A stretch of 64,000 bases of DNA from Entomortierella parvispora E1425 (taxonomy: Eukaryota > Fungi > Mortierellomycota). Location: positions 806,001 to 870,000 of the forward strand of contig BQFW01000013.1 in assembly GCA_020891255.1 (NCBI GenBank), in the 5' to 3' direction. The position numbers and the translations under genes were made by a program. This document shows positions 3,698-49,732 of the stretch, piece after piece (position 1 is the first letter of the stretch; every line of letters starts with the position of its first letter). The notes under the pieces are model-generated. The model saw nothing but the letters and a program-made list of their open reading frames with translations, searched no databases and had not been told where the DNA came from.

Positions 3698-6600
3698 CTA
3701 GTTGTCGCTGGAAAATTGAGATTCAACCAGAGAGGAATATAGGAGCAAGATCATCATATTGGTCACAATCTTGCAATTACAAATGTCACGTCTTCATCTT
3801 TATGAGCAAATTAGCCAGTCGAGTTTGACGTACCTCCTAATTGAGAAGACCAGAAACATCAGGGAGAAATACAGGTAGCCATGTCAGTTCCAATGATGCA
3901 ATTGTCATGTCTTGGTCGTTATGAGCAGTTAACAAGCTTCACGTACTCGCTGATGAAGAACAGAAACGCAAGGGAGAAGTACAGGTAGCCATGTCAGTTC
4001 CAATGATGCAATTGTCATGTCTTGGTCGTTATGAGCAGTTAACAAGCTTCACGTACTCGCTGATGAAGAACAGAAACGCAAGGGAGAAGTACAGGTAGCC
4101 ACGTTAGTTCCAATGTTGCAGTTGTTTGTCTTCGTCGTTATGAGCAATTAGTAGGCTTGTCTTACAGGCTGATTGAGAAGAACAGAAACGCCAGGGATAA
4201 TTACAGGTGGCCATGTTAGTTCAATCTTGCAAGTGCTATGTCTTCGTCGTTATGAGCAATTAGTAGGCTTGTCTTACAGGCTGATTGAGAGGAACAGAAA
4301 CACCAGGGAGAATTACAGGTGGCCATGTTAGTTCAATCTTGCAAGTGCTATGTCTTCGTCATTACGAGAGCTTGACGTACCGGCTGATTGAGAAGAGCAG
4401 AAACACCAGGGTGAAATACAGGTGGCCATGTTAGTTCCAATGTTGTAATTTTCATGTCTTCGTCGTTACGGGCAATTAGTAGGCTTGTCTTACAGGCTGA
4501 TTGAGAAGAACAGAAACGCCAAGGAGAAATACAGGGGGCCATGTTAGTTCCAATCTTGCAATTGTCATGTCTTCGTCGTTATGAGCAATTAGTAGGCTTG
4601 TCTTATAATACAGTACATGCTGATTGAGAAGAACAGAAACAGCAGGGAGAAATACAGGTAGCCAGCCATTTTAGTTCCAATGTTGCAATTGTCATGTCTT
4701 CTTTGTTACGGGCAATCAGTAGGCCTGTCTTACAGGCTGATTGAGAAGAACAGAAATGCCAAGGAGAAATACAGATGGCCATGTTAGTTCCAATGTTGCA
4801 GTTGTCATGTCCTCGTCGTTATGAGCAATTAGCAAGCTCGACGTACCCCCTAATTTAGAAAAGAAACACCAAGGAGAAACACAGGTTGCCATGTTAGCTC
4901 TAACACTGCAATTGCCATGTCTTCCTCGTTACGAACAATGAGCAAACTTGACGCACTTCCTAATTGAGAAGAACATAAACGCCAGGGAGAAATACAGGTT
5001 GCCATGTGAGTTCTAATGTTGCAATTGTCATGTCTTCGTCATTGCGAGCAATTGGTAGGCTTGTCTTACGAGCTGATTGAGAAGAACATAAACACCAAGG
5101 AGAAATACAGATGGCCGTGTTAGTTCCAATCTTGCAATTGTCATGTCATCGTCGTTATGAGCAATTAGTAGGCCTCTCTTACGTGCTGATTGAGAAGAAC
5201 AGAAACAACAAGGAGAAATACATGTAACCATGTTAGTTCCAATCTTGCGATTGTCATGTCTTCGTCGTTACGAGCAATGAGCAAACTTGACGTACTCCCT
5301 AATTGAGAAAAACAGAAACACCAGGGAGAAATACAGGTGGCCACGTTAGTTCCAATGTTGTAATTTTCATGTCTTCGTCATTACAAGCAATTAGTAGGCT
5401 TGTCTTACGAGCTGATTGAGAAGAACAGAAACACCAAGGAGAAATACAGATGGCTATGTTAGTTCCAATGTTGCAGTTGTCATGTCTTCGTCGTTATGAG
5501 CAATTAGTAGGCTTGTCTTACAGGCTGATTGAGAAGAACAGAAACGTCAGCGAGAAATACAGGTTGCCATGTGAGTTCCAACGTTGCAATTGTCATATCT
5601 TCGTCGTTATGAGCAATTAGTAAGCATGTCTTACACCCTGATTAAGAAGAACGGAAACACCAGGTATAAGTACAGGTGGCCATGTGAGTTCCAACGTTGC
5701 AGTTGTTATGTCTTCGTCGTTATGAGCAATTAGTAGTCCTGTCTTACGTGCTGATTGAGAAGAACAGAAACACCAAGGAGACATACATGTGACCATGTTA
5801 GTTTTAATGTTGCAATTGTCATGTCTTCGTCGTTACGAGCAACGAGCAAGCTAGACGTACTTGCTGATTAAGAAGAGCAGAAACGCCAAGGAGAAATACA
5901 GGTTGCCATGTTAGTTCCAATGATGCAACTGTCATGTCTTCGTCGTTAAGAGCAATTAGTAGGCTTATCTTACAAACTGATTGATAAAAACAGAAACGCC
6001 AGGGAGAAATGCAGATGGCCATGTTAGTTCCAGTGTTGCAATTGTCATGTCTTCGTCGGTATGAGCAATTAGAAAACTTGACGCACCCCCTAATTTAGAA
6101 TTTAGAAAATAAACAACAAGGAGAAACACAAGTTGCCATGTTAGTTCCAATCTTCCAATTGTCATGTCTTCCTCGCTACGAACAGTGAGCAAACTTGACG
6201 TACTCCCTAATTGAGAAAAACAGAAAGACCAGGGAGAAGTACAGGTTGCCATATGAGTTCCAATATTGCAATTGTCATGTCTTTGTTGTCACGAGCAATT
6301 AGCAAGCTAGACGTACTCGCTGATTAAGAAGAACAGAAACACCAGGAGAGGTACGGGTGGCTATGTTAGTTCCAGTATTGTAATTGCCGTGTCTTCATAG
6401 TTATGAGCAATCAGTAGGCTTGTCTTACAGCCTGATTGAGAAGAACAGAAACACCAGGGAGAAGTACAGGTGGCCATGTTAGTTCCAATCTTTCAATTGT
6501 TGTCTTCGTCGTTTTGAGCTATTATCTAACTTGACATACACGCTAGTTGAGAAGAACAGAAACACCAGGGAGAAATACAGGTGGCCATGTTAGTTCCAAT

Positions 6601-7127
6601 GTTGCAATTGTCGTGTCTTCGTCGTAATGAGGAATTAACAAGCTAGACGTACTCCCTAATTGACAAGAACAGAAACACCAGGGAGAAATACAGGTAGCCA
6701 TGTTAGTTCCAATCTTGCAGTTGACGTGTCTTCGTCATGATGAGCAGTTAACAAGCTTCACGTACTTGCTGATTAAGAAGACCAGAGGCGCCAAGTAGAA
6801 ATTCAGATGGCTATGTTAGTTCCAATGTTGCAATTGTTATGTCTTCGTCGCTATGAGCAATTAGTAGGCTTGTCTTACATCCTGATTGAGAAGAACAGAA
6901 ACACCAGGGAGAAATACATGTAACCACGTTAATTCCAAAATCTTGCCATTGCTTTGTTTTTGTCGGTACGAATAATATAGGACGGGTTGTCTTAATCGAC
7001 AGCAGGTGTTCATCAAGAGGCGCCTGTAGTTTTGCGATTTTCTTTTTTTTTTCTATTCAACTTACGTTGGAGCAGCCATGGTGACACCTAGAAAGGCAAC
7101 AAGGACAAGAAGGAATTTGATTTTCAT
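3698..7127 (-). CDS. Small secreted peptide gene built from 28 three-nucleotide microexons (copy 1, predicted 51 aa)
   Basis: Exon 1 7127-7066 (MKIKFLLVLVAFLGVTMAAP+AC, then GTAAGT). Microexons flanked by AG/GT, in gene order (lowest coordinate): GAT6879 CAA6766 GGA6653 CGT6540 GCT6429 CGA6317 GGA6204 GGG6087 TTT5974 CAA5861 CAC5748 GGT5635 CCT5522 CTC5409 GGA5296 CAC5183 CTC5070 GAA4957 GGG4847 CCT4734 CAT4617 CCT4494 CCG4381 CCT4278 CCT4166 CGA4057 CGA3947 GAG3834. Last coding exon 3707-3698 (TTTTCCAG|C GAC AAC TAG). The joined frame has no internal stop. Confidence 0.8.
3780..6950 (-). repeat. Tandem array of ~113-bp units (28 copies), each unit = one intron + one 3-nt exon
   Basis: Minus-strand consensus GTAAGACAAGCCTACTAATTGCTCATAACGACGAAGACATGACAATTGCAACATTGGAACTAACATGGCCACCTGTATTTCTCCCTGGTGTTTCTGTTCTTCTCAATCAG-NNN; most periods are 110-113 bp, range about 103-123. 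Confidence 0.97.
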
Positions 7128-46726: not shown

Positions 46727-47141
46727 CCAAGCGTGGAGTAAAGTGATCTTTCCATTCTCCTAAACAGCAAACACAATAAGCGCATGCCGTCAGCTATTGT
46801 TCATGGCGATGGGTGCCTCACACAAGGAAACCACAAGTCCGTCGATATCTCCCTCGAATCCAATCTAGGAGAGCTGCTTTCAGGCCAGAAATTTCCTGGC
46901 CCCTTCAGCAGAACGTAAGACCAATCGATGCTGGAGGGAAATAAGGACGGGCACCATCTAGTCACACCGGCCGTCTTCCCCGCTCCCTTCCTCCTCGCCC
47001 CAAAATCGAGTTCTTCATGCTCTCCACAGCCAGAAGTGGACGTCAACCATTCTCTGACAAAAGAGTAAAAAGTTTGCTTTGTGCAGCGACCGTCGCTTGT
47101 TCAAACTTCTTCACATACAATCCAGCTTCACCCACCTTACA

Positions 47142-48598
47142 ATGAAAATCGAATTCCTTCTTGTCCTTGTTGCCTTTCTAGGTGTCACCATTGCTACTCC
47201 AGCGTAAGTTGAATAGAGTAGAAAAGCCTAAGAAGACTACAGGCGCCTATTGATGAACAGCGTCTGTCGATTAAGACAACCTGTCCTATTGTCAGTATCG
47301 ACGAAAATGATGGCAAGATTGGAACTAACATGGTTAAGTGTATTTCTCCTTGGCCTTTCTGTTCTTCTCGATCAGCCCGTAAGGCAAACCAGTCCATTGT
47401 TGGTGATGACGACTACATGACGAGTGCAACACTGGAACTAACATGGCCACCTGTACTTCCCCCCGGGTTTTCTGTTCTTCTTAATCAGCCTGTAAGGCAA
47501 ACCGACTAATTGCTCATAACGACGAAGACATGGCAATCGCAAGATTGGAACTAATATGGCCACCTGTATTTATCTCTGGCGTTTCTGTTCTTAACCAGCC
47601 TGTAAGACAAGCCTATGGCTCATAACGACGACATGTCAGCTGTAAGATTAGAACTAACATGGCCACCTGCGCTTCTCTCCGACGTGTCGGTTCTTCTCAA
47701 TCAGCGGGTACGTCAAGTTTGCTAATTGCTCATAACGACGAAAGACATTGTAAGATTAGATAATAACATCGTCACCTGTATCTCTGACATTTCTGTTCTT
47801 CTCAATCAGACCGTAAGACAAGCTTACAACTTCTTCATAATGACGGCATGACAACTGTAAGATTAGAACTAACATGGCCACCTGTATCTATCCCTGGCGT
47901 TTCTGTTCTTCTCAATCAGCGCGCGTCAAGTTTGCTAATTGCTCATAACGACGACATGACAACTGCAACATTGGAAATAACATGGCCACCTGTATTTCTT
48001 CCTGCCACGTTTCTGTTCTTATCAATCAGCCTGTAAGACAAACCTGCTGATTGCTCGATGACGACATGGAAATTGCAAGATTTTAACTAACATTGCCACC
48101 TGCATTTCTCTCCGGCGTTTTTGTTCTTCTCAATCTGCACGTAAGTCAAATGTGCTAATTGCTCATAACGACGAAAGACGTTGTAAGATTAGAACTAACA
48201 TGGCCACCTGTATTTATCCCTGGCATTTCTGTTCTTCTCAATCAGCGAGTACGTCAAGTTTGCTAATTGCTCATAACGACGAAGACATGGCAATTGCAAG
48301 ATTGAAACTAACATGGCCACTTGTATTCCTCCCTGGCATTTCTGTTCTTCTCAATCAGCCCGTAAGGCGAACCAGTCCATTGTTGGTGAGGACGACGACA
48401 TGATAATTGCAAGATTGGAACTAACATCGCCACCTATATGTCTCCCTGGTGTTTCTGTTTTTCTCAATCAGCCAGTAAGGCACACCAATCCATTGTTGGT
48501 CAGGATTACTATATGACAATTGCAAGATTGGAACTAACATGATGACCTTATTCCTCTCTTCCTCTCTGGCTCGATATCAATTTTTCAGCAGAAAATAG
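47142..48598 (+). CDS. Small secreted peptide microexon gene, copy 2 (11 units, 2 with damaged splice sites)
   Basis: Exon 1 47142-47203 (MKIEFLLVLVAFLGVTIATP+GC|GTAAGT). Triplets CCC47376 CCT47489 CCT47599 CGG47705 ACC47810 [CGC47920, donor GC] CCT48030 [CAC48138, acceptor CTG] CGA48246 CCC48359 CCA48472. Last exon 48589-48598 C AGA AAA TAG. Predicted MKIEFLLVLVAFLGVTIATPAPLLGPLDPHRK when the two damaged exons are skipped. Confidence 0.65.
47290..48545 (+). repeat. Tandem array (~100-115 bp, 11 units) homologous to 3780-6950, inverted
   Basis: Same GAACTAACATGGCCACCTGTATT...TTCTGTTCTTCTCAATCAG-NNN-GT unit. Confidence 0.95.
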
Positions 48599-48756
48599 GT
48601 TGGATCGCTCTCAGAGTTCACTGAGTTCTCCATTTTGTATCTGTTCAATGCGGCTTGTCAGCAACTTCCCCAAGACGAAATCCTTTGATCACAGCTCCCT
48701 CTATCGTGGCTTAAGGATTTGTTTCAATCGTAAGCAAGGCTTCCATCGCAAGAATA

Positions 48757-48802
48757 TAACGACACCCTCAGTTATACGACAGTATAACTGAGGGTGTCGT
48801 TA
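48757..48802. other. Perfect 21-bp inverted repeat with 4-nt loop
   Basis: TAACGACACCCTCAGTTATAC gaca GTATAACTGAGGGTGTCGTTA. Confidence 0.95.
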
Positions 48803-49732
48803 CAACCAGAGATACATAAAGCAGGGAAACTTTGCAAGCGAACAACAATTGATCAAAATCGAGGTTTTTTTTCCCAGATTCTTGTGGAACGTGCGTCAAG
48901 ACACGCGTTCTTTTGGACGCGCTCCGATCAAGGACGACAACCCTCTCAGCTGTCCACACGGTCGCCAATTTTTGATCGATGAGATTGATTCTCAAGGACA
49001 TAGCTAGAGGGATGGAAGGAAGGGTTGAAGCAAGGGGGATATCGAAGAAAGGAAGGATGAGTAGAAAACGAGAAAAAAGAAAAAAAAAGGATCTATGAGG
49101 CACGAGAAAAGAAAGGCAAAGACAAGTGCCATATGGAGTCTTTGCTCGCGCGCATGCTCTCCTTTGCCCAGTCGACACCAACAGCAGATTGCATTGTGGC
49201 AACAAAGGGCCAACAGTCTGGACCCCTGCTGCAAGTCACTCAACCAAGGCACTTTCTTCTTCACCATCATGGAAGGGCTATTGTGCCCCCTTCTCGAAGC
49301 CAGAGAGATACACATCTGCCAATGCCATTGCCATTGCCATCTCATCCCTTCGGTGTTCGATTGATCACAAACAACAACCCATGGGCCAATCCAATTTTGA
49401 TGTCAGGGGTAAACGTCCACACAGCACAGAGAGCAAGTTTGTTATCCTGCCACACGGAGGAATTAAGCGGAGGAATGGAATGATCTTTGGCACGCGCCTC
49501 CTACTGGCATTCGTTCAGGCGCTAGACACTAAATCTCTAAGACCTATAAGTGCCGAGACCTTCATCAAAGAGCAGTGCCATCCTTTGTCGTAAATCGACA
49601 GCCGAGGTCGGTTGCTGCGCTGGCGTTCTCTAAAGTATCTGATCACTCTCTCAATGATAGATATTGCCCTTGGGCTGTAAAGCCCCGTCATCCCTTCCCC
49701 AAGTCTTCAACCGCCTCTCGAAGACTTTTGCC

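Follow-up and report, generated by a model that had tools for sequence, protein, structure and literature searches.

The closest described counterparts of the locus reported here are the micro-exon genes (MEGs) of schistosomes, in which a first exon encodes a signal peptide and most of the coding region resides in very short symmetric exons, and which give rise to small secreted proteins; MEG products are highly variable on a conserved frame, and the skipping of exons does not disturb the reading frame (PMC10526429). Our locus, termed W2, lies on the plus strand at 47142-48598 of a 64,000-nt stretch of contig BQFW01000013.1 from the fungus Entomortierella parvispora E1425 (the window, i.e. the whole stretch of DNA that was analysed), and a homologous copy, W1, lies on the minus strand of the same window. 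In virtual models of these genes, as in MEGs, most of the coding sequence resides in symmetric micro-exons between a longer first exon and a last exon. MEG exons, however, measure 3-81 bp and are set amid the long and unrelated introns of a flatworm, which reach up to 5 kb, whereas in the fungal family nearly every internal exon would be 3 nt long and the ~110-nt introns are tandem copies of one sequence, so that one repeat would equal one codon. Moreover, MEG splicing is documented by RNA, whereas that of the fungal family is predicted from genomic DNA. As no database protein related to the W1 product was found, the resemblance is one of analogy and not of homology. The schistosome MEG is the closest known kind of gene, from which the fungal family departs by the size of its exons, by introns that are homologous and tandem, and by its host, an early-diverging fungus. 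Taking all evidence together, we regard W2, with a probability of roughly 0.6, as a degenerating paralogue within a spliced family of secreted-peptide genes with one-codon exons, a reading that derives from sequence comparison.

Mechanistically, the family recalls recursive splicing at the ratchet points of Drosophila and vertebrates, where a 3' splice site abuts a 5' splice site and removal proceeds stepwise from 5' to 3', the next donor being regenerated or exposed at each step. At ratchet points, 0 nt remain and a single long intron is taken out, whereas the spacers of the fungal family are 3 nt long at all W2 junctions and the removed segments would be short homologous introns. As the exons are not of zero length, the resemblance to recursive splicing is mechanistic only. 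With respect to the predicted products, the family resembles conotoxins, amphibian skin peptide precursors and fungal Kex2-processed peptides, in which a conserved signal precedes unrelated mature regions. The likeness consists in a conserved leader combined with predicted mature regions that are unrelated between paralogues. In conotoxin-type families, however, the core is encoded by ordinary exons and varies by point substitution, whereas in the fungal family the variation would arise via codon-sized exons and the copy number of units.

It is near certain that W2 is a member of this family by descent. It has the 62-nt exon 1 that ends in phase 2, ~110-nt units that are spaced 3 nt apart, and the terminal exon with the following GTTGG and 3' flank (Table 1), and its units are up to 87% identical to those of the paralogue L005; AG and GT are not kept at every junction, as they are in an intact member. 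Within a unit, the donor GTAAG or GTACG is followed by ~50 nt of further sequence, the branch-site motif GGAACTAAC or variants thereof (CTAAC-type), a pyrimidine-rich stretch and CAG, and the gap from the CAG of one unit to the GT of the next is exactly 3 nt at all W2 junctions. The 3' part of intron 1 is already unit-like, with GGAACTAAC at 47321 and the acceptor CAG. Tandem Repeats Finder (TRF) detects the W2 repeat at 47313-48541 with a period of 113 nt and 11.2 copies, and an array of the same unit, that of W1, on the minus strand at 3825-6951. A preliminary description of the window had regarded intron 1, the repeat intron, the distinct last intron and the stop exon of W2 as homologous to those of W1, and each of these elements was indeed found; the homology of exon 1 holds as well, albeit with 17 instead of 16 identical residues among 20. 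The difference in unit number, 11 in W2 and 28 in W1, and the unrelated triplets of the two copies could also be confirmed. The terminal exon of W2 is homologous to C-AAA-AAA-TAG in L003, L004 and L005, to C-GAC-AAC-TAG in W1 and to C-AAA-TAG in L006. Downstream, the invariant block AAGGATTTGTTTCAA occurs in the 3' flank of every paralogue, including the divergent L009, and in the metagenomic homologue L029. Open reading frames (ORFs) of this conserved flank gave no match in a Pfam search, and the flank may be an element of the 3' untranslated region (UTR) or simply part of the duplicated segment. The 3' flank of W2 additionally carries a near-perfect palindrome, ATAACGACACCCTCAGTTATACGACAGTATAACTGAGGGTGTCGTTA, at 48757-48806, which stems from an inverted duplication and is found only in W2 among the paralogues.

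Table 1. Features of W2 and of the related loci. Positions without a contig name refer to the window; cargo peptides and internal exons are predictions from virtual splicing.
Feature	Locus	Position	Strand	Description
Remnant promoter and 5' UTR	W2	46990..47141	+	homologous to upstream regions of paralogues, with deletions (alignments of W2/W1/L003/L005 and of nine loci)
Exon 1, 62 nt	W2	47142..47203	+	begins ATG; codes for the leader MKIEFLLVLVAFLGVTIATP, hydrophobic and resembling a signal peptide, and has 2 further nt; phase 2 at its end; donor GTAAGT
Intron 1, 172 nt	W2	47204..47375	+	5' part unique and kept among paralogues; 3' part unit-like
Eleven 3-nt spacers between tandem intron units	W2	47376..48474	+	intervening units 102-110 nt
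Spacers 1-6	W2	47376, 47489, 47599, 47705, 47810, 47920	+	CCC, CCT, CCT, CGG, ACC, CGC
Spacers 7-11	W2	48030, 48138, 48246, 48359, 48472	+	CCT, CAC, CGA, CCC, CCA
Lesion 1, donor of unit 6 lost	W2	47920..47928	+	CGC, then GCGTCA; 2-nt deletion relative to GTACGTCA
Lesion 2, acceptor of unit 8 lost	W2	48135..48140	+	CAG changed to CTG (48135-48137) before CAC
Last intron, 114 nt	W2	48475..48588	+	3' half ATGATGACCTTATTCCTCTC...TTTTTCAG unlike the unit; common to L003, L004, L005 and the copy without exon 1
Terminal coding exon	W2	48589..48598	+	CAGAAAATAG, i.e. C-AGA-AAA-TAG; stop 48596-48598, then conserved GTTGG
3' flank, probable 3' UTR and beyond	W2	48599..49080	+	~450 nt kept in all paralogues
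Copy 1	W1	3698..7127	-	exon 1 7127-7066; 28 intact 3-nt spacers (6881 to 3834) as internal exons; terminal exon 3707-3698; cargo a 31-residue acidic peptide
Paralogue	L003			15 internal exons; cargo TDALTAAVSADAIIATKK
Paralogue	L004			48 internal exons; Pro/Tyr/Cys-rich peptide; decapeptide YPTYPGDDRC twice, from a duplicated 10-unit block
Paralogue	L005			11 internal exons; cargo TILDLTAIDIDLKK
Paralogue	L006			18 internal exons, one of 6 nt; peptide with PSG three times
Paralogue	L007	G000:C8:3058900-3058560	-	28 internal exons; open except for TAA four codons before the terminal exon
Paralogue	L008			18 internal exons, units of a diverged subfamily; ORF reaches the terminal stop; last residues ...DPPIK
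Divergent paralogue	L009	G000:C15:2455595-2454500	-	family exon 1 and 3' block; heterogeneous, non-repeated introns
Tenth copy	L017	G000:C13:253100-253900	-	5' UTR end, exon 1 and donor deleted; terminal exon CAAAAAATAG intact
Metagenomic homologue	L029	Ga0302182_10033103, 110-1885 (contig of 2362 nt)		62-nt exon 1 MKAQYLLVLVAFLGFAVAAP 2 kb upstream of the search motif; 14 unit-type introns

A search of the genome with exon 1 and intron 1 yielded nine loci, and a search with the unit recovered these nine together with a tenth that has no exon 1 (C13 near 253.9 kb); the family thus numbers at least 10 paralogous loci, with arrays of 5 to 48 junctions. The preliminary description had pointed to Mortierellaceae, which is correct, and an ORF neighbouring the locus is 100% identical to EMPS_09478 of E. 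parvispora. Unit matches in the genome were confined to these family loci, with no dispersed copies in other genes. When splicing was carried out virtually, requiring only AG and GT at the homologous positions, an ORF extended to the homologous terminal stop in W1, L003, L004, L005, L006 and L008. The proposal that a conserved leader precedes a hypervariable predicted cargo, originally made for the two copies of the window, holds across the 10 genomic loci and one metagenome contig. Blocks of units have been duplicated together with their triplets, namely a 10-unit block present twice in L004 and a 3-unit block with three occurrences in L006, and among the last units of W1 two identical ones with CGA adjoin each other; these unit and block duplications suggest that the peptides grow by whole codons. 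L009 contains several candidate exons of 3, 6, 9 or 18 nt from which a unique gene model cannot be derived, and it may represent an older state of the family.

Which observations argue that these arrays are spliced and coding? The 62 nt of exon 1 show zero indels in all ten sequences compared, and its dN/dS ratio (nonsynonymous to synonymous divergence) is ~0.17 (mean dN 0.124 and mean dS 0.733 over 40 pairs), with 10, 5 and 14 variable sites at the first, second and third codon positions. The N-terminus of the encoded leader is basic, its hydrophobic core spans 13 residues, and A-P is preceded by small residues. Judged by its substitution pattern, exon 1 is under purifying selection as coding sequence. 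When left unspliced, it meets a stop one codon later, and it therefore needs a downstream partner. The spacers, whose pattern goes beyond chance, point in the same direction. In an alignment of 38 units with 113 columns, entropy peaks at bases 2 and 3 of the spacer, which rank above all other columns (1.83 and 1.88 bits; mean 0.54), and AG and GT beside the spacer are essentially invariant. In pairs of units that differ by 2.8% over 100 flanking bases, a difference is seen at triplet base 2 in 34% and at triplet base 3 in 45% of the pairs; in a per-column control, the two bases score 0.37 and 0.51, as compared to 0.041 on average and 0.19 at most in the other columns. Between such near-identical units, the rate of change at these two bases is 9-12 times that of the mean intron column. 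This pattern suggests either that these bases are diversified by selection, or that they are protected by selection while the introns homogenise, and either mode of selection would imply that the triplets carry meaning. The splice signals themselves are kept, with GT and AG intact at 180 of the 182 junctions of the family and at 171 of 171 outside W2, and the zones between branch site and acceptor contain 1 AG in 142 introns, as compared to ~69 expected from shuffles, although such unit-based counts are not independent, as the units share ancestry. Two loci also deviate from the 3-nt rule in a way that preserves the frame: one exon of L006 has 6 nt, and a 5-nt exon of L008 is offset by a terminal exon of 8 nt (7 nt in L006), so that the frame again ends with K-TAG.

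A homologous array was also found outside the genome. A scan of metagenome contigs with the motif of the 3' flank gave one true homologue, L029, and 14 unrelated matches; a scan of the contigs with a 21-nt word of exon 1 had no match. Identity among the introns of L029 is as low as 56%, with a mean column entropy of 1.02 bits; GT and AG are nevertheless invariant, and the CTAAC-type branch motif is largely conserved. Its exons measure 3, 3, 9, 12, 3, 3 and 6 nt, followed by seven of 3 nt, and hence are all multiples of 3. The ORF is open to the stop in the homologous terminal exon, the virtual product being the leader plus VSEDPGTNNADDLWNGMYYSI. The fused exons of 6, 9 and 12 nt look like the residue that would be expected from precise intron loss in a spliced gene. 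In the same scan, seven contigs (L018, L019, L024, L025, L027, L028 and L031, from Ga0307507, Ga0307509 and Ga0307513) carried the 21-nt search motif as part of a multi-copy element that is highly similar and of coding appearance; no microexon arrays were found near the motif in these seven contigs, and the element is probably an unrelated repeated gene of another fungus.

Given these sequence patterns, it is likely that the family is truly spliced and encodes secreted peptides. The gene plan would begin with a promoter and with an exon of 62 nt that encodes a cleavable signal peptide and ends in phase 2, continue with the unique intron 1 and with tandem ~110-nt spliceosomal introns with 3 nt of exon, i.e. 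one codon's worth, between neighbours, and close with a short stop exon. As steric reasons make it unlikely that the two sides of a 3-nt exon are recognised at the same time, we propose that the introns are removed singly from 5' to 3', following the logic of recursive splicing, with 3 nt left per step. Each splicing event would turn a triplet into the end of a long upstream exon and thereby expose the next donor. Since exon 1 leaves two bases, bases 2 and 3 of a triplet would provide the first two codon positions, with the wobble position filled by base 1 of the following triplet, which is nearly always C. The resulting mRNA would encode the leader and a secreted peptide of 12-52 residues, usually ending with K or KK, and by analogy to other secreted peptides these C-terminal basic residues could be trimmed by a carboxypeptidase. 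Recombination among the near-identical introns would add, delete or duplicate single codons or blocks of codons, and cargos that differ wholly between paralogues would be the outcome of such recombination. In such a “codon cassette” architecture, each ~113-nt repeat would supply an intron and a codon, as many as 48 consecutive 3-nt exons would be spliced stepwise, and residues could be added, deleted, duplicated and possibly skipped, which would result in a fast-evolving peptide family of Mortierellaceae. We lean slightly towards this complete scheme.

The donor sequences show a further regularity, which we do not use as evidence. Among the 172 triplets of all arrays, the donor GTACGT comes after a triplet with a final purine in 39 of 45 cases, and GTAAG after one with a final pyrimidine in 82 of 88 (Fisher test, 1e-10), and in L007 and L008 the donor is GTAAGT throughout, whatever the triplet. 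The association was set aside because the positions are adjacent and co-inherited in duplications, and because the logic of U1 pairing is unclear; it could reflect linkage in duplications or a balanced splice-site strength. As for other genes of the genome, a Pmp3-family and an MPC gene (G000:C11:1762150-1762411 and G000:C12:2270101-2271051) have ordinary, phase-consistent introns at the junctions that were read.

Several points weigh against the interpretation of the family as spliced peptide genes and of W2 as their decaying relative. The support for splicing consists of genomic sequence. No protein of 28-89 amino acids with the leader is contained in a collection of 5.8 billion proteins, no protein of that collection shares three 5-residue words with the virtual W1 product, and the family peptides are absent from the deposited annotation; neither annotation nor the transcript assemblies behind the collection have thus yielded them. 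Runs of up to 48 consecutive 3-nt exons are without precedent in the literature searched: nothing relevant was found on arrays of 3-nt exons or on tandem coding introns in fungi, and the search yielded single 3-nt exons, schistosome MEGs, tandem introns with small nucleolar RNAs (snoRNAs) and introner-like elements, but no arrays of one-codon exons. The closure of the reading frame, which had been put forward as independent support in a second copy, does not serve as such, since both the phase of exon 1 and the terminal exon are shared by descent, and the frame is preserved whatever the number of 3-nt exons. With C-first 3-nt spacers, both frame closure and the absence of stops are almost automatic; base 1 is C in 84% of the 172 triplets, which makes stops nearly impossible in any frame, and as shuffles within a gene rarely create one, a test for stop avoidance is powerless. 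L007 does contain an in-frame TAA, formed by the triplets ATA and then ATC. Either its peptide stops early, which would leave three introns to the 3' UTR, or L007 is an impaired copy as well. In addition, the pseudogene L017 keeps five intact unit junctions, and intact units alone are therefore no proof of selection; gene conversion without selection could hold the signals intact for a while. With regard to W2, the lesions could be assembly errors, as the genome of strain E1425, for which a stranded 2x150 RNA-seq library (DRA013164) is also described, was assembled from Nanopore and Illumina data (PMC8759367; Illumina DNA reads DRA010776) and a Nanopore-based assembly had to resolve a tandem repeat.

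What alternatives exist for the proposed peptide family? The arrays could be intron-derived satellite DNA that encodes no peptide and is either untranscribed or removed as one block, in which case the triplets would be meaningless. The missing database proteins, the powerless frame and stop arguments and the purely genomic nature of the data would all agree with this, as would the still intact-looking units of the copy without exon 1, and tandem repeats can homogenise without function. Such a satellite would, however, hardly be hypervariable in exactly two of 113 columns next to a fixed AG and GT, nor would it be preceded by an exon with the coding-type dN/dS of ~0.17. The longer spacers of 6, 9, 12 and 6 nt and the 5-nt spacer that is offset by an 8-nt terminal exon are equally difficult to reconcile with it, and the L029 array has kept every GT and AG and largely the branch motif despite its divergence. 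If the array were removed as one block and exon 1 joined straight to the terminal exon, the product would be a signal peptide with two or three additional residues only. We therefore consider meaningless triplets unlikely. It is also conceivable that the introns are the product, i.e. that each tandem intron of a host gene releases a small RNA and the tiny exons are incidental. Tandem near-identical introns with short exons are known from snoRNA host genes, such as the SNORD115/SNORD116 arrays in mammalian SNHG14 with dozens of tandem introns between short exons (PMC11608373), and the intron body is well conserved between the fungal units. However, SNHG14 introns encode box C/D snoRNAs and its exons are non-coding, whereas the exon bases are the variable and apparently meaningful part of the fungal family. 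Unlike in snoRNA host genes, the units lack an Rfam match (at E up to 1 on either strand) and a folding signal (six units fold no better than shuffles, z -0.9 to +3.2), and no C/D-box or H/ACA-like motifs were seen on reading the unit. As a small-RNA function would also leave the hypervariable spacer, the coding-type exon 1 and the multiples-of-three spacers unexplained, it appears very improbable. Finally, with respect to the origin of the arrays and compatible with coding, a mobile introner-like intron might have been inserted after every codon of a formerly continuous ORF, as opposed to a joint duplication of intron and codon with later divergence of the codons. This would account for near-identical introns with differing bases in between without any need for selection, and introner-like elements, i.e. 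many near-identical spliceosomal introns per genome, do exist in fungi (PMC3609843). These elements are scattered over hundreds of unrelated genes, exceed regular introns in length and are predicted to form stable structures, whereas the unit described here is tandem, confined to the loci of one gene family and unstructured. Moreover, the blocks in L004 and L006 and the CGA pair of W1 were duplicated together with their triplets, and an insertion in the same phase 48 times in a row is implausible, which leaves very little room for an introner origin.

With the spliced peptide family as the preferred reading, the question is whether W2 still works. The two lost splice sites that had been noted in W2 are both real in the assembly, and they are the sole lost donor and the sole lost acceptor among all junctions of the family. 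According to the preliminary description, the loss of 3-nt exons would leave the frame unshifted, W2 would encode the peptide APLLGPLDPHRK, and the copy might be decaying. Skipping a 3-nt exon does indeed leave the frame as it is. In a working gene of this kind, the two damaged units would be skipped as a whole, each within a ~215-nt intron, and the mRNA would encode the leader plus APLLGPLDPHRK, with the chain ...ACC-CCT-CGA-CCC-CCA-C-AGA-AAA-TAG and a string ending ...GGACCCCTCGACCCCCACAGAAAATAG. A strict AG-NNN-GT parser does yield this ORF, with introns of 217 and 213 nt, and no damage affects exon 1, intron 1, nine of the junctions or the terminal exon. The peptide is nevertheless doubtful, as both damaged units would have to be skipped cleanly despite intact signals. 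The branch site and the CAG acceptor of unit 6 are still present and should pair with the upstream donor; splicing intron by intron, as followed by hand, would then join ACC to CGCGCG... (CGCGCGTCAAG) and read through to a TAA after ...APLLGPARQVC. Unit 8 likewise keeps its branch site and its donor, and the first AG beyond the branch site lies inside GTAAGT. The damage is not confined to the splice sites. In the alignment, ~230 nt that are present in W1, L003 and L005 are missing just 5' of the 5' UTR of W2, the lost block includes the TATA-like TTTAAATA, which is located ~100 nt before the ATG in L003 and L005, and the 5' UTR has a further deletion of ~30 nt. The units of W2 are also the most diverged of the arrays, with 74% matches in TRF as compared to 79-80% in W1. 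As both broken junctions of the family and the lost promoter block coincide in this one copy, the earlier aside on decay turned out to be the better reading, and W2 is probably a degenerating copy, as far as can be judged from its sequence; that it is a working gene with clean skipping appears unlikely. The most likely outcome for W2 is the absence of a correct mRNA, or a truncated product in place of APLLGPLDPHRK.

For the biology of the family, the contrast between W2 and its relatives is informative. W2 can be seen as a natural knock-out, in which decay means the loss of a donor, of an acceptor and of a promoter block, and this contrast to the fully intact junctions elsewhere argues that the other copies are kept by selection. 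If the interpretation is true, the spliceosome handles dozens of adjacent 3-nt exons, far beyond what is known from micro-exon genes, in the longest known run of minimal exons, and the family would be a natural test bed for intron definition and recursive-type splicing. Whole families of secreted peptides would then escape standard annotation. The tandem repeat would alter a protein one residue at a time, and this would be a route of peptide evolution and diversification that is not described in the literature searched.

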